64,000 nucleotides of DNA, from sequence record PP885688.1; one strand, written 5' to 3'. The position numbers and the translations under genes were made by a program. The notes beneath the pieces are model-generated. The model had not been told where the DNA came from, made no database searches, and saw only the letters and a program-made list of their open reading frames with translations. Positions 2,949-60,200 of this stretch are shown here, piece after piece. Position 1 is the stretch's first letter, and each line of letters opens with the position of its first letter.

Positions 2949-4406
2949 CTAGGCTGCTGACTTCGAAATGGGATCGCCGCACTTACCGCAGAGAGTTACG
3001 TTCGCCTGAGCCTTTTTTTGCTCAGTCTTTCGCTGCTCTGCCTGTATCGTTGCGACTGCTTCTTGTGCGGCTGCGAGCTCCGCTTCGAGATCAGAGAGCC
3101 TGTGCTGCGCCAGCTGTTGAGCCTCGCGGCCCTTCACCAGCGCCTCATAACTTCTAATACCCAAGCGGTGACGCTCTACCTGAATTACGTGTGCATTTAT
3201 TTGCGTAGTGATCGCGTCGATCGCCGCAATGCGTGACTTCGTTGGTGAGTTCGAGGAGACCGTGAGCGCCGCCTCGGCTTCAGTGAGAACCTTGCCCCGT
3301 TTGTGCAGGGCGACGATGGCTGTCCAGTTGCCGACTACCAGCTCGATCGCATCGAGAACCTTGCCGTTGCTTGCGACGCGCGTCGAAGCTTCGACCAGCT
3401 GACCGAGATAGGCCGCCTGCCGGTACCGTCGTACCGCCGGAGCCGCATCGGGGACAGTGAGGACCTTCAGGAGGTCGGTCGTACGCTGATGGCGACCCTT
3501 GGCGTGCGCGGCCTGAGAGTAGGCGGCAGCCAGGGCGAAGTCATGGGCAACAGGCTCCGCATCCGGGACTACCAGATTCAGGACAACCTTGCTGATGCGG
3601 GCGTGACGTTCGAGAGCGGCGACGGCGGTCGCATAATTGGCGACCAGCTGAATGGCGACGGCGATCGGCTTGGTCTCAGGGATCACGAGCTGCTTGATGG
3701 TGGACTGAATCTGAGCGAGCCTGCGCCTATGCGCGATCAGGACATCGATCGTCGCGAGGATCTTCTCCTGCGTGCGTACCTGGGGCTCCAGACGATCGAT
3801 GACGGCCTGGACGGCTTCCGCACGATCGGCGAGAGCATCCAGCTTGGAGACGCGCTCCTCGGTTCCACGGGTCTCTTTGGCAAGCATCGTGGCCTGGGTG
3901 TTCTTCTCTCCGATGCGCTTGTTGCCAGCCTTCTTCCCAGCTTCAAGGCGCTCAGTGGACGAGAACGCTCCAAGGATAGAGTTCAGTGGGCCGGGCTTCT
4001 CTTCGATGATGAATTGGCCACCGAACTGGGTAGCGAAGATGGGATCGAGGGTGACGTCACCGATCTGGATGTCGCCCATGTTGAGGTCGAGTACCTCTTT
4101 CGGGATCGAGCCGCCCAGCTTGGCATAGGGTTCGCCCTTATCGACGACGTAGACGATGGATCCCTTGGGACCTTTCTTACGGGTAGCCTCGATAACATGA
4201 CCGTCGATCTCCAGAGTTACCTCCATGAGATCGCTGCCGACACGGACCTGACCGGCGTTGAGCTGGTTGCGCACGATACCCATAAAAGAGCGGAACAGGG
4301 CACTCTTGCCGAGGTTGCTCTCACCTACGACGACCGTGAGGTCCTCGATCGGCAGTTCGAATTCTTCCCAAGACTGAAAGTTCTTGGCGCTGAGTTTTAT
4401 AGCCAC
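2949..4406 (-). CDS. SbcC/Rad50-like protein, N-terminal ATPase half + coiled coil + zinc hook
   Basis: LSAKNFQSW, Walker A GESNLGKS, long coiled coil, terminal CGKCG; no signature/Walker B half. Confidence 0.8.
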   Translation of the reverse strand: MAIKLSAKNFQSWEEFELPIEDLTVVVGESNLGKSALFRSFMGIVRNQLNAGQVRVGSDLMEVTLEIDGHVIEATRKKGPKGSIVYVVDKGEPYAKLGGSIPKEVLDLNMGDIQIGDVTLDPIFATQFGGQFIIEEKPGPLNSILGAFSSTERLEAGKKAGNKRIGEKNTQATMLAKETRGTEERVSKLDALADRAEAVQAVIDRLEPQVRTQEKILATIDVLIAHRRRLAQIQSTIKQLVIPETKPIAVAIQLVANYATAVAALERHARISKVVLNLVVPDAEPVAHDFALAAAYSQAAHAKGRHQRTTDLLKVLTVPDAAPAVRRYRQAAYLGQLVEASTRVASNGKVLDAIELVVGNWTAIVALHKRGKVLTEAEAALTVSSNSPTKSRIAAIDAITTQINAHVIQVERHRLGIRSYEALVKGREAQQLAQHRLSDLEAELAAAQEAVATIQAEQRKTEQKKAQANVTLCGKCGDPISKSAA

Positions 4407-6335: not shown

Positions 6336-7241
6336 TCAAATGGAGAAACTGATACGGTCGAGTCGCGCTTTTTTGGTCTTCGCGTCTCGGAGCAACACGT
6401 CGTAGTTGCGGCGTTCGTAGCGCACCCAGTACTCGCGGCGGTGAAGGATGCCCTTGATGCGGGTGCGGGCATTACGGCCTTTACCCACGACCTCTTCGGT
6501 CGCGTTACACATCGCGGTCAGGAACCGCAGAGGGACGCTCTCAGGACTACCGAGCAGGATGGCTGCGCTGTAGCGGGCCATCATGGCCATCAGCACGGCA
6601 TCGCAGGCGTCGGTGTCGAGGTTGGGATACTTACCCTGGTCGAGATAGCTGTAAGCCTTCGCGACGTTCTCAACCTTGTTGCTCGCGCCTTGCTTCGTCA
6701 GGCCCATGAGGGAGCGCAGAGTCGAAGCATTCGTCATCTGCACCTGGACGCGGTCGATTCCAAATCTCTTGAAGTCCATGTCCAGCAACACGAGGTGCAG
6801 GATTCGGCTGATCGAGATCAAAAAATCGTTTTGCGGCGTAGGTGCTTCGAGCGAGATGATGAGTCCCGTCTTGGCGACGACGTTACGAACAACGAAACTG
6901 TTGAGTAGTTCCTCAAGGTGCTTGCGCAGGGTGAGCGCGATCGACTTCGACCGCACCCACACCGGCACGCTTGCGTCCTCAGGCTTCAGGGAGCCAACGT
7001 CAAGCCATCTGGCTTGTGTGCCCGATTCGAAAGGGATCCTTCCGACGTGCATGAAGGCATAACCTGTGCGTGACAGAGAGGGATCGAGGCCCATGATGAT
7101 CCATTGGTCGATACCTTCCGCAACAGGAGGAACGCGCAGCTCAGGGGCCGCCTGTTCCTTCTTCACGCGAGGTGTCCTGGGAGTCTTTGCGACCTTCGTC
7201 GTCTCTGCTCCCACGATGCTGCTCTTCACTGCTTTGGCCAC
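6336..7241 (-). CDS. RuvC-like Holliday junction resolvase
   Basis: IIMGLDPSLSRTGYA, SLEAP, DACDA acidic motifs. Confidence 0.75.
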   Translation of the reverse strand: MAKAVKSSIVGAETTKVAKTPRTPRVKKEQAAPELRVPPVAEGIDQWIIMGLDPSLSRTGYAFMHVGRIPFESGTQARWLDVGSLKPEDASVPVWVRSKSIALTLRKHLEELLNSFVVRNVVAKTGLIISLEAPTPQNDFLISISRILHLVLLDMDFKRFGIDRVQVQMTNASTLRSLMGLTKQGASNKVENVAKAYSYLDQGKYPNLDTDACDAVLMAMMARYSAAILLGSPESVPLRFLTAMCNATEEVVGKGRNARTRIKGILHRREYWVRYERRNYDVLLRDAKTKKARLDRISFSI

Positions 7242-7257
7242 GTAAAACTCCCATCAG

Positions 7258-7291
7258 CTAATACCGCTCGAAGCGGTCAGTCCCGGATTAC
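7258..7291 (-). promoter_or_regulatory. class B promoter motif
   Basis: GTAATC-N20-GGTATTAG upstream of ruvC/recA operon. Confidence 0.7.
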
Positions 7292-7297
7292 TGGGTG

Positions 7298-7333
7298 AAA
7301 AAAAAGCCGGAGCCACAGAGAGGCAGCTCCGGC
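7298..7333 (-). terminator. intrinsic terminator after SSB-like gene
   Basis: GCCGGAGC/GCTCCGGC stem plus T8 on minus strand. Confidence 0.75.
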
Positions 7334-7341
7334 GTGAAGGC

Positions 7342-8121
7342 CTACAGGTCGTCCGTGTTGTCGATCTGCTTGTTACCCGTGCCCGCACCAGCAGCTGCAG
7401 AGCTGCCGCTGAGGAGTGCCTTCATGTCGAGCTCGGTGATCTTCTTACCGAGCTGCTTGACGAGGAACGCACCATCCTTGAACTTGTTTGCCTCTTCGAT
7501 AACTTCGGCGAGGAGTTCAGGATTGCCACGGAAGCGAGCGCCCTGGGACACGCGCACGTAGTTGAAGCCGATACCGTTGTCGCGGTACTTGATCGCGAAG
7601 TCGAAGCTGTGAGCCTCTTCGCCTTCCATCACCAAGTCAGAGATGCCCTTGAATCCGGACTGCGAAAGCTTGACCCAGCCGAGTTCCCACATAACCGGCG
7701 GGAAGTTTCCACTCGCGTCTTTCTTGTACTTGCCGCTCGCGGGATCAGCGTTCTTGTACTTGAGTGCAAGGACGGCGAAGTTGAGCTGAGCACGCTGGTT
7801 GTCGTCGCCATTGAGCTTCTGGCAGCAGAGTCCCTGCGTGATGATGTTGTGCTTCTTGTCGCGGACAGACTGGCAGCGGTAACCGTACTTCTTGTCACCG
7901 ACCTGGATGAAGTGCATCCACGCCATACGAGGCTTGACGATATCCGTCAGAGCTGCGCAGCGAATGTAGCTGGTCTTATCAGCGGGCATGATCTTCTGCA
8001 GACCAGCTCGCGAAAGAGCATCTTCGTCGCCGAAGTCAACAGCGCAATCGTCTGTATCGAGGTCTGAGTTAGAGGTGGAGGCGAGGGTGGACTTTACTTT
8101 TACGTCTTCGTCATCAAACAT
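7342..8121 (-). CDS. putative single-stranded DNA-binding protein (gp32-like)
   Basis: Aromatic-rich beta-type body, Cys/His cluster, acidic tail DNTDDL, next to recA/ruvC; inference. Confidence 0.55.
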   Translation of the reverse strand: MFDDEDVKVKSTLASTSNSDLDTDDCAVDFGDEDALSRAGLQKIMPADKTSYIRCAALTDIVKPRMAWMHFIQVGDKKYGYRCQSVRDKKHNIITQGLCCQKLNGDDNQRAQLNFAVLALKYKNADPASGKYKKDASGNFPPVMWELGWVKLSQSGFKGISDLVMEGEEAHSFDFAIKYRDNGIGFNYVRVSQGARFRGNPELLAEVIEEANKFKDGAFLVKQLGKKITELDMKALLSGSSAAAGAGTGNKQIDNTDDL

Positions 8122-31195: not shown

Positions 31196-32596
31196 CTATG
31201 CTGCGAGAGCTCTTTGGCGAATTTCTGGCCATGTAAAGCGCTGGGTGATCTCACCGTTCTTGAACACCGTCTCCAACGCATTGTCGGTGTAGAGCGCGTT
31301 CTCCTGAATGAAGCGGAAGCCATACTCGTCCTGCATCACAGCCAGGCGACCACGCTTCGAGCTCTTATTCGGGGAACCCTTCGGATCCTTGAACACGTCG
31401 AACCACTTACCGTCGATGTCCACAGCGCAGGCCTTGATCGCCATGTTCAGCGTGTCGCGGTCGCACTTCTGGTGGATACCGCCACCCTCACCGAGACAGG
31501 CGAGGTTATCGACTGACCAGCGGTTGTGCTCGATCGAGGCCAGCAGAGAGTAGGCGGACTCGTAGTGGATGCCGTCACCCTGCAGCAGGCGGACCTTGGG
31601 GTTGATCACCTTGTAGCCCTTGTCGTTGTACTCGCAGCCAAACTTGTCTGCGAGGATCTCGAAGCCGCGACGTACTACGCCTTCTGGATCACCAGAGTCA
31701 GGCCGGACAACGAAGACACCGTCACGCCTGAGGATCTGGTCGCGGAGGATGCTGCCGTAGATCTCAGAGCAGGCGGCCTCGAAGTCGTAGGAGTCTGACA
31801 CATTGGACACGGGACCCGTGGGGTAGACCGTGAGCATGTTGCGTGCGGCTTCGGCTTCACGCTCGCGTCCCCATGAGGTGACAGTCGAGTGCTCCGACGC
31901 CGGAACGCTGCCGCTGACGGTTCCGTTCTCACCGATTCCACCGTAGTACTCTTCGATGAACTCGTTGGCCGGGTGCGTGTCCGATCCGCTGAAGCTGAGC
32001 AGGTGGGCGGCACCGGCGAGCATCGCCGATTCCTGGGTGGTTGATCCGCGATAGCCGAAGTCCTGCCACATCCAGTCGATGTTGGCCGGAGTGCCGGTGC
32101 GGTTGAGGAAGTCGAGCATCATGACGCGCTTGGCGTACTGCTGTGACGCTACCGTGGTCGGATACCAGTCGAGCAGAATGGTCTCGACGAAGTTGGTGAG
32201 CCAACCCAGCTTTGGATCCGTGTTCTCGACGGTGAGAAGAGGAATGCCGTGGCCGGTGCGTGTGCCTTCTGGCAGAGCCTTGATCAGAAGAGGCAGTCTG
32301 CCGCCATGGGCTTCGAGGAGATGCTCCCAGCCAGCGTCATTCCAGACGCGGGGACCCATGCTCGAGATAATGCGGGCCTTGTTGCGGTCGATGTCTCTGC
32401 GGGTGACGCGGATGCCTTCGAGGTACTCGGTGAGCAGGTACTGCAGACCGAAGGTGATTACGTTGCGATACTTGCCGCCGCGTGCTTCGAAGTAGGACTG
32501 CATGTAGCGCATCCCTGGCGGATACAAGCGCCAGTGGCTGTACTTGTAGGCGTCGGAGCGTCCGACGATCGACGATGACATTTTCGATAGGGCCAT
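31196..32596 (-). CDS. nadV: nicotinamide phosphoribosyltransferase (NAMPT)
   Basis: SDAYKYSH, DFGYRG, VPASEHS, SDSYD, VRPDSGDP, LLQGDG, KDP..K.SKRG. Confidence 0.95.
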   Translation of the reverse strand: MALSKMSSSIVGRSDAYKYSHWRLYPPGMRYMQSYFEARGGKYRNVITFGLQYLLTEYLEGIRVTRRDIDRNKARIISSMGPRVWNDAGWEHLLEAHGGRLPLLIKALPEGTRTGHGIPLLTVENTDPKLGWLTNFVETILLDWYPTTVASQQYAKRVMMLDFLNRTGTPANIDWMWQDFGYRGSTTQESAMLAGAAHLLSFSGSDTHPANEFIEEYYGGIGENGTVSGSVPASEHSTVTSWGREREAEAARNMLTVYPTGPVSNVSDSYDFEAACSEIYGSILRDQILRRDGVFVVRPDSGDPEGVVRRGFEILADKFGCEYNDKGYKVINPKVRLLQGDGIHYESAYSLLASIEHNRWSVDNLACLGEGGGIHQKCDRDTLNMAIKACAVDIDGKWFDVFKDPKGSPNKSSKRGRLAVMQDEYGFRFIQENALYTDNALETVFKNGEITQRFTWPEIRQRALAA

Positions 32597-32613
32597 GGTG
32601 TTCCTCTGCTTTC

Positions 32614-32708
32614 GTGTGCTGTCTTTAGCGGCTTAGGCCGGTTAGTGTGCTGTCGTTAGCGGGTGCCCTCAAGAGCACGTAAAGCGGGATAAGGTGCTCT
32701 TGAGGGCA
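32614..32708. repeat. two 18-nt direct repeats and a perfect 15-bp inverted repeat
   Basis: GTGTGCTGTC(T/G)TTAGCGG at 32614-32631 and 32645-32662; TGCCCTCAAGAGCAC 32664-32678 / GTGCTCTTGAGGGCA 32694-32708. Confidence 0.85.
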
Positions 32709-32713
32709 GGTGG

Positions 32714-33763
32714 TTACTTCTTGTCGGGCTGCGGCCAGGGTTCGGTCGGCTGCCCGCGAGAGGGGAGGGGTGCGCAGGTGTCGGAACCAAACCACGGCTT
32801 GAAGAAGGGGCGGTTGGTTGGCGTTTCGTCTGCCTCGTAGTCGCCGGTGGCCTTGATCTCCTCGATCTTGGTAAGGGCCGCGTGAGCGAGGATGAGGTGG
32901 TTAGGCATGATCTGGTCGAGCGGGATCCCGTCGAACCAGCGGACCTCTTCGAGATCGTCAGAGGCGATCGCAAGCTGATCCTTACCGGCGTTGATCATGA
33001 ATAGTGCGGTCATGATCTTGTCCTTGGCGCTACGGTAGCGGTGATCGTCGATGCGATAGCTGCCGATGTAGGTCGCGTTCACGACGTTGATGCCGGTCTC
33101 TTCATCCACTTCGCGGCAAGCTGCGAACTCTAACGAAGGATCCGTGGGATCTACGAAGCCACCGGGGAAGCGGTAGAGAGTCTCGCCATGCTTGCGACCA
33201 AGAAGGATGCGGACGGGGTCGATGCCTGGCTGAGCCGAGTCAAAGATGGCCATGTCGACGCACTGATAGGAGATAGGGAAGCGCTGCTGGGTGGAGTAGA
33301 TGATGCCAGCGCGGAAGTCTTCAGAAGCGCGGGCGTGCTTGCCGATCTGTGCGCGAACCTCGGTGCCGGAGGGCGCTGCGAGCTCAGGGAGGACAACGGC
33401 GGAGAACTTGCCGGTGTAGTGCTTGATGAACGAGTCGCGTGATCCGTAGAGGACCGGTGTCAGATCTCCGGCTGCGTAGGCGACGCGTGCATCGAGCGCC
33501 TTGCTCCACTCTTCGTCGGAGGCCATGTCCGGAATGTCCATGGTGTAGTTGCCGACGCCGAGCTTCTCGGTGAACATCTGGCGGCGCGTCTCATAGTCCA
33601 GGGGGTTGGTGTCGGTACCACGTGTGACAGAGGTTCCGATCATGATCAGAACCTTCTCGTGCCGTTCTGCTACGCGGTTGATCAGCGAGCGGTGGCCTTC
33701 GTGTAGCTTTGTGACCTGAAAGCGTCCAACGACTACGCCGATCGTCTTTGAATCTCGTGCCAT
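32714..33763 (-). CDS. bifunctional NMN adenylyltransferase / Nudix hydrolase (NadM-Nudix, NatV-like)
   Basis: VVGRFQ..LHEGH, NPL, SGTEVR; Nudix box PGGFVD..REVDEETG. Confidence 0.9.
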   Translation of the reverse strand: MARDSKTIGVVVGRFQVTKLHEGHRSLINRVAERHEKVLIMIGTSVTRGTDTNPLDYETRRQMFTEKLGVGNYTMDIPDMASDEEWSKALDARVAYAAGDLTPVLYGSRDSFIKHYTGKFSAVVLPELAAPSGTEVRAQIGKHARASEDFRAGIIYSTQQRFPISYQCVDMAIFDSAQPGIDPVRILLGRKHGETLYRFPGGFVDPTDPSLEFAACREVDEETGINVVNATYIGSYRIDDHRYRSAKDKIMTALFMINAGKDQLAIASDDLEEVRWFDGIPLDQIMPNHLILAHAALTKIEEIKATGDYEADETPTNRPFFKPWFGSDTCAPLPSRGQPTEPWPQPDKK

Positions 33764-33817
33764 GAATAAGTCCCTCACCGGCTAATACCGTTCCGAGGGG
33801 CGCGAGGGTGATTATTG

Positions 33818-33851
33818 AAAAAGAAAAAGCCCAACTTTTTAGGGTTGGGCT
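33818..33851 (-). terminator. terminator after tmRNA coding piece
   Basis: AGCCCAAC/GTTGGGCT stem plus TTTTCTTTTT. Confidence 0.75.
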
Positions 33852-33859
33852 CCTTCTTG

Positions 33860-34092
33860 GTGTTGAGAAATAAACCCACCGGGTTCAGAGGCCTATTACT
33901 AGGCGGCCATGGCGAAAGCGCGGGTCGAGCTGACGGCAGGCACGAACTTACGTGCGAACGACAGAACCTTTGCAGTACCACGGACAACAGGGCTGTTTTT
34001 GGCAGTTGTTGGTTTATGTGTCCTTTTACGATGGCCACACCGGTCGGCTAGTCACTCTCTCAACTTTTCACCCGTCGAAGCCTGGCGGGCCC
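33860..34092 (-). ncRNA. ssrA: permuted tmRNA, coding piece
   Basis: 5' end GGGCCCGCCAGGCTTCGAC at 34092, pk1-like segment, tag ORF 34003-33899 ending AFAMAA then TAG TAA TAG; 3' end approximate. Confidence 0.85.
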
Positions 34093-34128
34093 ACAATTCA
34101 ACACACGCGGTAATGTTCATGTGCTGAA

Positions 34129-34395
34129 TGGTGGACCCGGCGAGAATCGAACTCGCGTCCGAATGACAAAACAAAGAGCATGTCTTTTCACTAGCTTTAC
34201 CACTCCTCTGTTAAGAGGCGGCGTCTGCGATGATCTGCAGGAATATCAAATTTGAAAGATTCTCAGAGGCTACCTGGGTAGCTTGATGTTGCAGCCCTGA
34301 GTGACTCACCTCCGGGTAGCGTTACTGCGGTCCGGCAGCGTAAATCACTCAGGTACTAATAGGGGATTCGGAAGTCGTTTCTCATCCGTCCCACA
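34129..34395 (-). ncRNA. ssrA: permuted tmRNA, acceptor piece
   Basis: Ends GGACGCGAGTTCGATTCTCGCCGGGTCCACCA at 34129 (T-arm, discriminator A, CCA); pairs with coding-piece 5' end including G3.U70; 5' end inferred from promoter at 34401. Confidence 0.85.
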
Positions 34396-34400
34396 CTTAC

Positions 34401-34434
34401 CTAATACCCAAGTGCGGGGCACTTCACCCATTAT
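34401..34434 (-). promoter_or_regulatory. class B promoter motif for tmRNA
   Basis: ATAATG-N20-GGTATTAG. Confidence 0.65.
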
Positions 34435-34778
34435 TGTTTTCGTAATCCCCAATCACTTGTATCGAGGACGACGACGGTGTCGCTGTTGGTAGGTAGCGGC
34501 TCGACCCCTGCCATGTAGTCGGTGACCACAAGCTTGCCGCGCGGGACCGACTGGTGCGTCCCCAGAACACAGTCCCAGATACCGCCGACGACTTCCTGCT
34601 TGCGCTCCTTCCATGTCGCCTTCCTCCGATAGATGAACGGGTGGAAGTCGATGCGGAAGTGCACGCGGTCAGCGGGGTGCATGTAGATTCGAATCTGGGC
34701 ATCCTTCACAGCCAGTGCGGTGATGTAAGCGACAGCTTCGGCGAGGCGGTGTAGATTTCTTTGCTGCGATTGCGTCAC
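34431..34778 (-). CDS. hypothetical protein
   Basis: 115 aa, AGGAG RBS, class B motif at 34810. Confidence 0.65.
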   Translation of the reverse strand: MTQSQQRNLHRLAEAVAYITALAVKDAQIRIYMHPADRVHFRIDFHPFIYRRKATWKERKQEVVGGIWDCVLGTHQSVPRGKLVVTDYMAGVEPLPTNSDTVVVLDTSDWGLRKQ

Positions 34779-57295: not shown

Positions 57296-60200
57296 TTATC
57301 GTGTGGGCAGTGCGCCGTTTGAGGCCACGAGAGTGATGGCGTTAGAGGGGTAGACAGTCCAGGTGAAAGCGACTGAGGCGTTGACGCCGGAGTCCGACAC
57401 CGAGAAGTTGAAGGTATGAGTCCCCACCCCTGCCGCACCAAAGGGTCCGCTCAATGCGAAGACAGCGGACTTGGGCAGAGTGATCGTCTGGGAGCCAACG
57501 GAAAGGTTGATGGTTCCCAGGGAGACGCAGGAAGCACTGAAACCAGCCGGGACGCCGAAGCTGAAGCCAGACGGCGAGGTCGAGATGACGTTGGTCGCTA
57601 CGATCAGGAAGCTCAGGTTGGGACGCGGGTTGATGGCGGTGACATCTCCATTCGCGACAAGACCAAGCGAGTTGAGCGAAGAGCCCGCGATGACGTCAGG
57701 ACCAGCGAAGAGCTTGATACCGGCGAGCACGGTAACCGGGAATGTCGCCTCACGCACGACGCCGATCGAGTCGGTGACGCGGAAGGTGATGTTCTTCGAG
57801 AAGCCCGAGGCCAGCGTGGTGCCGAAGATCGTGCCGGACGGAGGATCAATGCTGAGTCCGCTTGGCAGAACTGAGGCAGAGTTCGGGGACACAGACCATG
57901 TGTAGCCGGGTGCGCCGCCAGTCGCGGTGAGAGCGAAGTTGTAGGGAACGCCTGCAGTGGCCTGCGCCACCGAGGTGGAGGTGATCGCCAGTGTGGAGGC
58001 GAGCGCAATCAGCTGGAGGCCCTTGGTGGCGAAGTCTCCGAGATGATCCGTTACGCGAACCACGATAGTGAGATTTGCTGTCGCCGTGGGAACGCCGGAG
58101 ATGATGCCGCCGCTGGAGATCGTGAGTCCATTCGGGAGCGGCGGCGAGGTGGGATCAAGCGACCAGGTGAAGGGTGGGTTGAGACCGTTCGCCAAGAGCT
58201 GCACCGAGTAGTTTCCGGTGACCGTTGCCTGGGGCAGCGAGGTCGTCGCAACCGAGAGGCCGGAGAAGGTGTCGAGCGGCAGGAAGGTCACAGCCGAGTT
58301 TCCGTTGGAGTCGACGACCTGAACCTTGACCGAGTCATTGAGCAGCTGAGCCACGGTACGTCCGGCGAGCGTCGCGGTTGCACCCTGATTGGTCGCGTCG
58401 CCGGTAAGTGTGAAGCCCGGCGGGAGGATGTTCGGAGAGTCAGCAGCGATCGACCAGGTGTAAGGCGCAATACCGTTGCCGATGACACTGAGACGACCGT
58501 TGTAGGTTGCTCCGCGAACGATGGGGCCGATACCTTCGGTGTCGATGATGAGGCCGAAGTTTGATCCGATCGCGAGCAGGAAGGTCGCCGTGGCAACGTT
58601 GTTGGCCGCATCGGTCACTTGCACAATGATGTTCTCGGAGAAGCTGCTGAGGCTGGTGGCTCCGGACAGGATGCCAGAGGCAGATAGCGTGATGCCGCCG
58701 GGAAGCGCTGCAGATCCCGAGCCGAGTGACCACTGGTACGCGCCTTGTCCGCCTGCTGCCTGAACCTGGAAGATGTAGTTGGTGCCGGGGGTGATGACGG
58801 GGAGAACCGGGGTCGTGATCGTCAATGTGTTGTTGATGATCAGAGCCAGTGCAGCTGAAGCCGAGACGCCGCGTGCATCGGTGACCTGGAAGGTAATGTC
58901 TGAATTGAAAGCCGCGTCGCTAGGAGTGCCTGAGAGGACGCCGGAGTTCGCGTTGAGCGTGACACCGTTGGGCAGCGTGCCGCCGGTAACGGCCCACGTG
59001 TAAGGCTGAGTTCCGCCGGTGGCGTGGAGGGTCTGTGAGAACGCTACGCCGGTGAGGATGTTCTGGAGGAAGGTCGTCTGAACGACGAGCGGCGCAATGT
59101 ACGCGAACACGAGGCGCTTGTAGAGGTAGGCGACCTGATTGTTTGCGTTGGTCACCGAGATCCACACGTCGTAGTAGCCAGCCTGCGTCGGCGTGCCGGT
59201 CAGAGTGACAGACTTCGCATCCGTCGAGATCCCGAAAGCCATGCCGGTGGGCAGCACGCCACGGTGAATCGTGACTCCACTGAGTGGTGCCGAGGAGCTC
59301 GATCCGAGCGTGCCCGTGTAAGCCGCCTGCAGTTGGCCGTCGACGAGGTTATCGATCAGCTGGAACTGGCTGGCGACGATGTCCCACACCACGGTGATCG
59401 TGGCCTGAATGGTGCCGGTCGAATCGACGTACTGAAGGGTCGACTGCGCGACGTCGGCGGCAAGCACGGATCCATAGATCAGGCCGGTGACTGAGTCGAG
59501 CGACAGGCCGAGTGGGAGCGTGCTGTTGAGCGCAACCTGAACCTTGTAGCCTGCGTTCTTGAAGATGCTGGGAGAGTTGAAGTAGGGGCGCTGCGGGTTG
59601 AGACCGACGACCTCTCCTACGATGTAAGGCTTGGTTGTGCAGGTCATGTCTCCGCTGTTGTTGGTTCCGTTGTAGGAGACCAGCGTGAACGCGCGGGTGA
59701 TGGTGGCGACCTGTGTGGTGCCCTGCAGGATGGCGATCGGAAGCTCGATCTCAGCGTTGCCGAACTTGGTCGGTGGGCCGGTGACGATGAGCGAGTTGGT
59801 GGTAGGGTCAACTGTCGCGGTGAGGCCGTTCGATGCGGTCACCGGCGTGCCAGCGCCGATAGCGAAGCCAGAGAGATCTCCGGCAATGGGGTACACGACC
59901 TCGGTGGTGTCGCCTGCGCCCCAGAAGTGATCGACCGCAGTCTCTGCGATATCGACACTGGAGACCGGCGTGTCCACGGTGTAGTTGAAAGTATTGTGCG
60001 TCACGGTCGCGGTGGAGTCGGCGACGGTGAGCGTGAACTGGTGGGTTCCAACTTCACCCTGCAGCGCCGCGACCTGAATCAGCGCATGGCCGTCGACGAT
60101 GGAGACGACGGTAGCCGAGGCGACCGAGATGCTGAGAACGCGTGTGACGGTATTGCCGAGGAGATCGGTTGCACGGACGCCGATCGCCCACTCACCCAGA

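Follow-up and report, generated by a model that had tools for sequence, protein, structure and literature searches.

Can a bacteriophage carry a complete gene for a two-piece transfer-messenger RNA (tmRNA), and from where would such a gene have come? The question is raised by a short locus in a 64,000-nucleotide (nt) stretch of sequence record PP885688.1 (record positions 124001-188000, hereafter the window), for which an earlier note, made from the letters alone, had proposed a phage-encoded, circularly permuted tmRNA, possibly permuted independently of the known ones. Window positions 33860-34400 show 100% identity (BLAST) to Tunturiibacter phage Tunturi_5, PP885688.1, a jumbo myophage with a circular genome of 308,711 bp. 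The phage originates from Finnish tundra soil, and its isolation host is the acidobacterium Tunturiibacter psychrotolerans X4BP1, so the note's guess of a probable Acidobacteria phage was right. A complete circularly permuted tmRNA gene is present at window positions 33818-34218 on the minus strand, and it is probably a functional ssrA gene for a two-piece tmRNA. The record holds zero annotated features between gp219 and gp218, where the gene sits, and the Tunturi_5 paper (PMC11924767), in which RNA genes were called by tRNAscan-SE only, never mentions a tmRNA. The gene is therefore unannotated both in the GenBank record and in the paper.

The permuted tmRNA model of Rfam identifies the locus directly. 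RF04321 (tmRNA_permuted) aligns over its full length (model positions 1-213) to window positions 33899-34195 on the minus strand, scoring 86.4 bits where the threshold is 47 (E = 3.5e-15); a covariance-model search of this kind was among the checks that the note had proposed. A generic pattern for a permuted tRNA-like domain has one match in the window, against 0.00 expected. The gene order is permuted, with the acceptor 3' half (34139-34129) lying upstream of the 5' half (34092-34086). The two halves form a stem of 7 bp with G.U as the third pair (G3.U70), and the T arm, acceptor stem and intervening hairpin together fold at -40.3 kcal/mol (z = -6.1). All of the sequence features listed in the note were found in place when the minus strand was read.

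Cofolding of the piece pairs gave energies no better than shuffled controls; cofolding is uninformative for such G+C-rich pieces, and covariation was used instead. Once the intervening sequence is taken out, 96.2% of cells are paired across 21 distinct family sequences, compared with 34-51% when the partners are slid, and 13 compensatory pairs are found; 0 of 500 shuffles reach any of the measures. The T stem and acceptor stem are 100% paired and hold seven compensatory pairs. Across the family the acceptor stem occurs in nine forms, all of which keep G3.U70, and the pair is invariant in 21/21 family sequences and in 36/36 of a wider set, which upholds the stem and identity pair described in the note. 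The helix 2 pairings that it had drawn between the two pieces are likewise present and carry compensatory changes: the outer part is 91-93% paired and the inner part 99%, while the middle part is not placeable in register. For 38 distinct permuted tmRNAs the corresponding values are 97.7% of cells paired and 22 compensatory pairs, in an alignment that leans toward the model's structure.

The generic pattern matches at least 120 loci in IMG/VR, several of them on contigs of 160-330 kb. Only two among the matches listed, L076 and L090, are like the window beyond the tRNA-like domain, and a pk1 block common to all three, GUGGCC-NN-CG-N5-GGACAC, serves as the family pattern, which matches the window. 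In metagenomes this pattern yields 11 further true permuted tmRNAs (L124 being the contig of L076); several adjoin tRNA genes, and the 143-kb contig of L126 includes an array of 12 tRNAs. Among bacteria and archaea, with one genome per species, it yields 11 true copies, all in uncultured Acidobacteriaceae and on contigs of up to 1.42 Mb. These are loci in metagenome-assembled genomes (MAGs; L137, L138, L141, L146-L148, L150, L151, L153, L156 and L157), and the metagenomic L135 is of the same type. Beyond the MAGs, the family comprises about 12 soil or peat phage-like contigs. The neighbors of the MAG copies include MutL, LysR, GH127, an M48 peptidase, FabZ, LpxI, Bax1-I, an ABC transporter and similar genes, and no phage genes were seen around them. 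The family model R1 scores the MAG copies at 161-167 bits, the window at 121 and other members at 95-143, with two exceptions, L133 (62.6 bits, with a 126-nt intervening sequence) and the 5'-truncated L125 (56.1 bits, not in the model); no further permuted tmRNA tested from IMG/VR exceeds 84 bits. The window's own score is partly a product of construction, because the window is in the seed of the model. In the 309-kb Tunturi_5 genome, R1 finds the gene as a single copy. A tree of the tRNA-like domain, helix 2 and pk1 places the window with the MAG copies and L076 (92/92 support), and in whole-gene comparison the MAG copies need the fewest gaps against the window. Judged by covariation and by these comparisons, the Tunturi 5 gene belongs to a distinct family shared with Acidobacteriaceae chromosomes and soil phages.

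The chromosomal sites are not constant. In L146 the permuted tmRNA lies just upstream of an M48 peptidase-fabZ-lpxA-lpxI cluster; this cluster is present in L167 and L168 (Acidipila sp. EB88 and another 4.1-Mb genome, reached through LpxI), where the tmRNA is absent. The position of the gene is thus variable among relatives, which fits mobility. No tmRNA was found within 10 kb of Bax1-I in Acidipila sp. EB88 and Granulicella sp. L46, and a protein search with an antisense open reading frame (ORF) that overlaps the MAG tmRNA gave no matches. A 332-kb jumbo-phage contig (L030, IMGVR_UViG_3300033405_000002) encodes a further permuted tmRNA at 2638-2988, with a 3' domain like that of the window and the tag ANAPKAMAAHA. 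Beside it, at 6645-7583, is a tRNA cluster in which two tRNAs have the anticodon CUA (which reads UAG), a hint at reassignment or suppression of the amber stop codon.

The elements of the Tunturi 5 gene and of its flanks are collected in the following table.

Features of the permuted tmRNA gene and its flanking signals, in window coordinates and in 5' to 3' order on the minus strand
Feature	Position	Strand	Sequence or pairing	Basis or remark
Bipartite promoter-like motif	34401-34436	-	CAATAAT (34436-34430), 21 nt, GGTATTAG (34408-34401)	
Putative 5' leader of precursor	34219-34400	-	long hairpin at about 34358-34292	
Small hairpin	34205-34218	-	CCUCU-UAAC-AGAGG	5' side of acceptor piece; read from sequence
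Acceptor piece	34129-34195	-		Rfam alignment and covariation
Helix 2, 5' strands	34160-34195	-	GCUAGU (34195-90), CUCU (34178-75), UUUUGUCAUUCG (34171-60)	in acceptor piece
Helix 2 pairing, DNA letters		-	TTTTGTCATTCG (34171-34160) with CGGGTGAAAAG (34074-64); GCTAGT (34195-90) with ACTAGC (34052-47)	
T arm	34140-34156	-	GCGAG (34156-52), loop UUCGAUU, CUCGC (34144-40)	
Acceptor 3' end	34129-34139	-	CGGGUCC (34139-34133), discriminator A (34132), encoded CCA (34131-34129)	
Intervening sequence, 36 nt	34093-34128	-	hairpin prolonging acceptor stem	outside mature RNA; fold of 34160-34086
Coding piece, 5' end	34047-34092	-	acceptor 5' strand, D-loop analogue, helix 2 3' strands	
Acceptor 5' strand and D-loop analogue		-	GGGCCCG (34092-34086), then CCAGGCTTCGAC (DNA) / D-loop analogue CCAGGCUUCGA (RNA)	
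Helix 2, 3' strands	34047-34074	-	CGGGUGAAAAG (34074-64), AGAG (34060-57), ACUAGC (34052-47)	
pk1	34016-34046	-	P4 hairpin and P3	
P4 of pk1		-	GUGUG-G-CC / GG-A-CACAU (34040-33 with 34023-16)	
P3 of pk1		-	CGAC (34046-43) with loop bases AUCG (34032-29)	
Tag frame, 34 amino acids	33902-34003	-	resume codon GCC (34003-34001); encodes AKNSPVVRGTAKVLSFARKFVPAVSSTRAFAMAA	translation; ARAGORN reads homologous frame in relatives
Three in-frame stops	33893-33901	-	TAG TAA TAG	read from sequence
3' domain	33859-33904	-		local fold
P5 hairpin	33891-33904	-	GCCUA-GUAA-UAGGC	contains stops
Second 3' hairpin	33873-33885	-	AACCC-GGU-GGGUU	
Conserved single strand		-	UUUCUCAAC, then ACC (33861-59)	ACC can pair with GGU loop: pk2-like fold
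Intrinsic terminator	33818-33851	-	AGCCCAAC, 8-nt loop, GUUGGGCU, then UUUUCUUUUU	fold

The small 5' hairpin has other sequences at the same place in relatives (CCCC-GUCA-GGGG in the MAG copies, CCCC-GCAA-GGGG in L076). The intervening sequence ranges from 3 to 126 nt across relatives, with conserved flanks; within this one family it measures 3 nt (UGA) in L122 and L134, 82 nt in L126 and 126 nt in L133, and the 3-nt form puts the RNase P site almost directly after CCA. The terminal CCA is not encoded in every member: the MAG copies L150, L151 and L156 have ACCG, and the metagenomic L129 and L132 have ACAG in place of the terminal ACCA, plus an atypical T loop, GGCAGUU. These five would depend on a CCA-adding enzyme.

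In the coding piece, P4 is 100% paired in the 21 sequences, and its closing pair occurs in four forms (GC, CG, GU and AU). The tag frame opens directly on an Ala codon, no start signal preceding it, and closes with AMAA (hydrophobic-Ala-Ala), followed by stops. The tag ORF with its triple stop and the terminator behind it are as the note had read them, the terminator lying partly outside the range that it covered. The tag is long, 26-34 amino acids across the long-tag members of the family compared with a usual length of 10 (PMC11915505). Alignment of the long tags reveals a conserved core, [AG][KN][VL][LV][SA]F[PA], and a conserved end, A-[LF]-x-[LM]-A-A; in the window the core reads AKVLSFA, with an insertion of 6-7 residues between core and tag end. 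Four members of the RNA family (L125, L126, L129 and L132) have short tags of 10-13 amino acids that lack the core. Pairwise differences between tags are 0.315, 0.242 and 0.444 at the first, second and third codon positions, the third being highest, and 627 codon differences are synonymous. In the core, codons vary at their third positions with the residues unchanged. Compared across the family, the frame retains its amino acids while codons change synonymously, a coding signal. The 3' domain folds locally no better than shuffles (z = -0.6). Its loop and downstream partners co-vary, GGU/ACC in the window, CGUG/CACG in L076 and GGGAG/CUCCC in the MAGs, as read by eye from the sequences. The terminator folds at -21.6 kcal/mol (z = -4.7), and L076 has an equivalent layout.

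Upstream, the CAATAAT element overlaps the gp219 stop codon. The window holds 14 copies of the second element, GGTATTAG, where 0.29 would be expected, and every one is on the minus strand (first bases at 3161, 7265, 8186, 9018, 11231, 14713, 15753, 27891, 31125, 33789, 34408, 34817, 37331 and 43256). The aligned sites have in common an A(A/G)TAAT element about 21 nt upstream, and an ATG usually follows the motif after 3-6 nt, so placed that many genes of the minus strand have the motif in front of them. Because most sites combine the upstream element with an ATG at this distance, the bipartite motif suggests a phage-specific promoter that would yield leaderless mRNAs; two sigma factors, gp3 and gp211, are encoded by Tunturi 5. 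The motif of the 'class B promoter' that the note had placed at 34401 is real; its promoter role is a matter of inference. For the putative leader the fold energy is -68.2 kcal/mol (z = -3.4 relative to shuffles). Rfam gives no match to it, its long hairpin (34292-34358) is not followed by a U-tract, and a riboswitch such as that of phage Melnitz was looked for with Rfam and not found.

Several observations count against the identification of the locus as a working two-piece tmRNA gene. ARAGORN, which the note had named as a check, does not call the window tmRNA as run, although it calls most of the relatives as permuted. P3 of pk1 is weak, with three of four pairs formed in the window and, in the family, two invariant pairs and two weak ones (83% paired), so the pk1 pseudoknot is only partly supported; the pk1-like segment of the note stands for P4 and only in part for P3. 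About 185 nt separate the acceptor piece from the promoter motif upstream of it, and a long leader must be assumed. The D-loop analogue of the Tunturi 5 copy is one base shorter than in most relatives.

By model score, the family is most like the betaproteobacterial type, yet it remains below that model's threshold. The window reaches 46.9 bits with beta_tmRNA (RF01850, threshold 84) and aligns to model positions 61-183 only, the tRNA-like domain. Relatives score 41-64 bits against the same threshold, and for three of them (L134, L136 and L126) the alignment spans the complete beta model, 3' domain and MAA tag end included. RF01849 (alpha) and RF01851 (cyano) give no gathering-level match for the window; at E-value level, only beta_tmRNA is listed over the tmRNA stretch, in output that does not name weaker overlapping matches of the same clan. 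A 2025 tmRNA database covers 2144 Acidobacteriota genomes, with 1589 standard and 5 'permuted (beta)' genes, and has beta-type genes sparsely spread over many other phyla; Acidobacteria are unmentioned in its main text, and searching the literature for permuted tmRNAs of this group gave nothing relevant.

The simplest reading of these comparisons is that one beta-like permuted lineage travels between phages and bacteria and became established in a clade of the Acidobacteriaceae. The Tunturi 5 gene would have been acquired by transfer and not permuted anew, because a beta-like family is shared by Acidobacteriaceae chromosomes and soil phages. The transfer could have been recent, with Tunturiibacter itself having this permuted ssrA and the phage copy being a nearly identical allele. 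The nearest relatives are indeed chromosomal copies in the host's family, and the acceptor stem GGGCCCG/CGGGUCC is identical to that of the MAG copies; this comes near the host-type permuted allele that the note had named as refuting its reading. Recency is another matter: identity between the window and the sampled MAG copies is no more than 72-75%, and the window's branch in the tree is long (0.38). A strict family pattern run over 185,579 species has zero matches in named Tunturiibacter, Granulicella and Edaphobacter genomes, the MAG clade looks nearer to Acidipila (Bax1-I 74% identity) than to Granulicella-like genera (Granulicella 46%), and the database holds just the 5 permuted genes beside 1589 standard ones. 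A recent capture is therefore unlikely. Far less probable still is the note's own suggestion that a one-piece tmRNA was rearranged within this phage lineage. That all three lineage-specific Rfam models stay below threshold here, with beta_tmRNA scoring best, speaks for such an event, but homologous permuted genes of a beta-like type are found on chromosomal contigs of 11 Acidobacteriaceae MAGs and about 12 other contigs, phage-like ones included, with the same layout, pk1 block, tag core and 3' domain, and several relatives align to the beta model from end to end. One origin followed by transfer is simpler than repeated permutation.

From the intact anatomy we infer function in infection; where transcription starts, how the RNA is processed and charged, whether it tags proteins and what the phage gains are put forward as a proposal. 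A single precursor, probably transcribed from the phage-type promoter at 34436-34401, would end at the terminator at 33818. Host RNase P would cleave 5' of G34092 and 3' trimming would expose the encoded CCA at 34129, with loss of the 36-nt intervening hairpin, while the acceptor and coding pieces would stay joined through the acceptor stem and helix 2. Host alanyl-tRNA synthetase would charge the RNA through G3.U70 and A73, and host SmpB would bring it to ribosomes stalled on broken mRNAs. Translation would resume at GCC 34003, add the 34-residue tag with its AMAA end and stop at the triple stop, so that the ribosome is freed and host proteases can recognize the tagged product. The phage would probably gain by keeping ribosomes free during infection, when mRNA decay and host RNA-cutting defenses yield non-stop messages. 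The tmRNA would act alongside the phage's translation-related equipment, which comprises 43 tRNAs, a CCA-adding enzyme (gp279), an RtcB-type ligase (gp296), a peptide deformylase (gp58) and an S6-modifying enzyme (gp297). SmpB would have to come from the host: the note had seen no smpB in the window, and a tblastn search of the 309-kb genome with E. coli SmpB extends this to the whole phage (best E = 0.2, none annotated). SmpB occurs in 68 of 50,697 phage records, with Tunturi 5 absent among the matches listed.

Since the phage lacks SmpB, phage and host tmRNAs must share the host's SmpB pool, and the phage RNA could act as a competitor for SmpB, or its long tag could divert products to another protease or adaptor. 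The 34-residue tag with a conserved internal core, where 10 residues are usual, and the phage's HslV-family peptidase gp106 (record positions 82313-82888, outside the window) would suit such a role, and precedents are on record in the tRNA-like-domain-only tmRNA of mycobacteriophage DS6A (PMC4131195) and a similar tmRNA-inhibiting molecule (PMC11915505). The long tag core is, however, also present in the Acidobacteriaceae chromosomal copies and so is no phage speciality, and all parts for full trans-translation are intact, with the usual hydrophobic-Ala-Ala tag end. We consider the decoy or re-programming role improbable. The locus might also be inert, the leftover of an ssrA integration site or a decaying pseudogene, since ssrA fragments are frequent in temperate phages (PMC9004378) and recombinase or integrase genes are reported for Tunturi 5. 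This can hardly be credited for a gene that is complete from the helix 2 5' strand through the terminator, with all stems intact, an open tag frame closed by three stops, and divergence from its relatives that is compensatory or synonymous. A functional two-piece tmRNA gene is thus preferred.

The tag core might plausibly bind an adaptor, or some protease besides ClpXP; the parallels are SspB in E. coli and, in Mycoplasma, long tags directed to Lon. A larger proposal is possible but rather doubtful: a separate two-piece lineage, outside the three textbook ones, common to a clade of Acidobacteriaceae and to soil and peat phages and spread by phages, whose tag of 26-34 residues would contain a new internal recognition motif (K-V/L-L-S/A-F-P/A) for an unusual adaptor or protease, so that Tunturi 5 would have control over the fate of stalled products.

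The surroundings of the gene fit a large phage, with NAD salvage genes (NAMPT, NMNAT/Nudix), helicases, a UvsX-like recombinase, a polyvalent ADP-ribosyltransferase protein and baseplate J in the window. Directly downstream of the tmRNA, at 31196-33778 on the minus strand, are gp218 (a fused NMN adenylyltransferase-like/Nudix protein) and gp217 (nicotinamide phosphoribosyltransferase), near several nucleoside 2-deoxyribosyltransferase and ADP-ribosyltransferase domains. A gp218-based search for phage relatives in IMG/VR found none. ARAGORN also calls a 91-nt tRNA-Leu(GAG) at 59758-59848 on the plus strand, antisense within a 1106-residue ORF with Ig-like (He_PIG) domains. Since no Rfam tRNA match reaches threshold there, this is probably a false call.

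Compared with known systems, the family shares with the beta type (RF01850), its best-scoring lineage-specific Rfam model, the permuted gene order, the tRNA-like domain and helix 2, and in L134, L136 and L126 also the 3' domain CCGGGG...CCUNGNNAC and a tag ending in MAA. Unlike that type, it is hosted by Acidobacteriaceae and phages, and its tags have 26-34 residues with a core where the consensus has about 10. The betaproteobacterial two-piece tmRNA was reportedly recognized by Sharkady and Williams in 2004 as the third permuted lineage (via PMC9004378). The ssrA genes of the Acidobacteriaceae MAGs are the nearest tree group, with an identical acceptor stem, the pk1 block, the position of the small 5' hairpin, the 3' motif UUCCUCAAC and a long tag with a VVSFP/VLSFA core in common; they differ in a tag of 28 residues (34 in the phage), in a site among housekeeping genes, in sequence (identity 72-75%) and, in three cases, in encoding CCG instead of CCA. 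The Caulobacter two-piece tmRNA, said to have been described by Keiler, Shapiro and Williams in 2000 (via PMC9004378), serves as the working model, in which one precursor is cut into base-paired acceptor and coding pieces. It differs in being of alpha type (RF01849), which scores below the beta model here; its tag has 14 residues.

Among phages, the note's view that tmRNAs are mostly one-piece is not supported: a survey found tmRNA in 402 of 18,146 phage genomes, and 53 of its 133 unique forms are two-piece, mostly from marine phages (PMC9004378), to which the IMG/VR loci matching the generic pattern may be added. The marine two-piece tmRNAs (Methylophilales phage Melnitz, pelagimyophages and cyanophages; PMC9004378) are, like that of Tunturi 5, complete permuted ssrA genes of large myophages, placed behind a promoter and in need of host factors. 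They are, however, of alpha or cyano type with short tags, some with a glutamine riboswitch, and score at most 84 bits with the family model, compared with 121 for the window. The one-piece tmRNAs of the Bxz1 group of mycobacteriophages and of Bacillus phage G (PMC4131195, PMC7162821) are also ribosome-rescue RNAs of large phages with many tRNAs, but their gene order is standard. Huge phages with both tmRNA and SmpB have been described (PMC7162821), whereas Tunturi 5 has no SmpB. Phage two-piece tmRNAs are thus already documented, and the Tunturi 5 gene adds to them without being a fresh invention.

A published genome of a cultivable phage contains a gene that is missing from its annotation and that ARAGORN, as run, misses too. 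Tunturi 5 and its host can be grown in the laboratory, which makes them a rare system in which to test a phage two-piece tmRNA in a soil bacterium. In some Acidobacteriaceae, permuted ssrA is found in the midst of core genes. For the phylum only the standard form is described in the literature searched, and the 2025 database table lists its five 'beta' permuted entries without comment. The conserved core of the tag offers a concrete starting point toward a new degradation signal. Because beta-like genes are scattered over phyla and are present in phages, phages may be moving ssrA between bacterial lineages.

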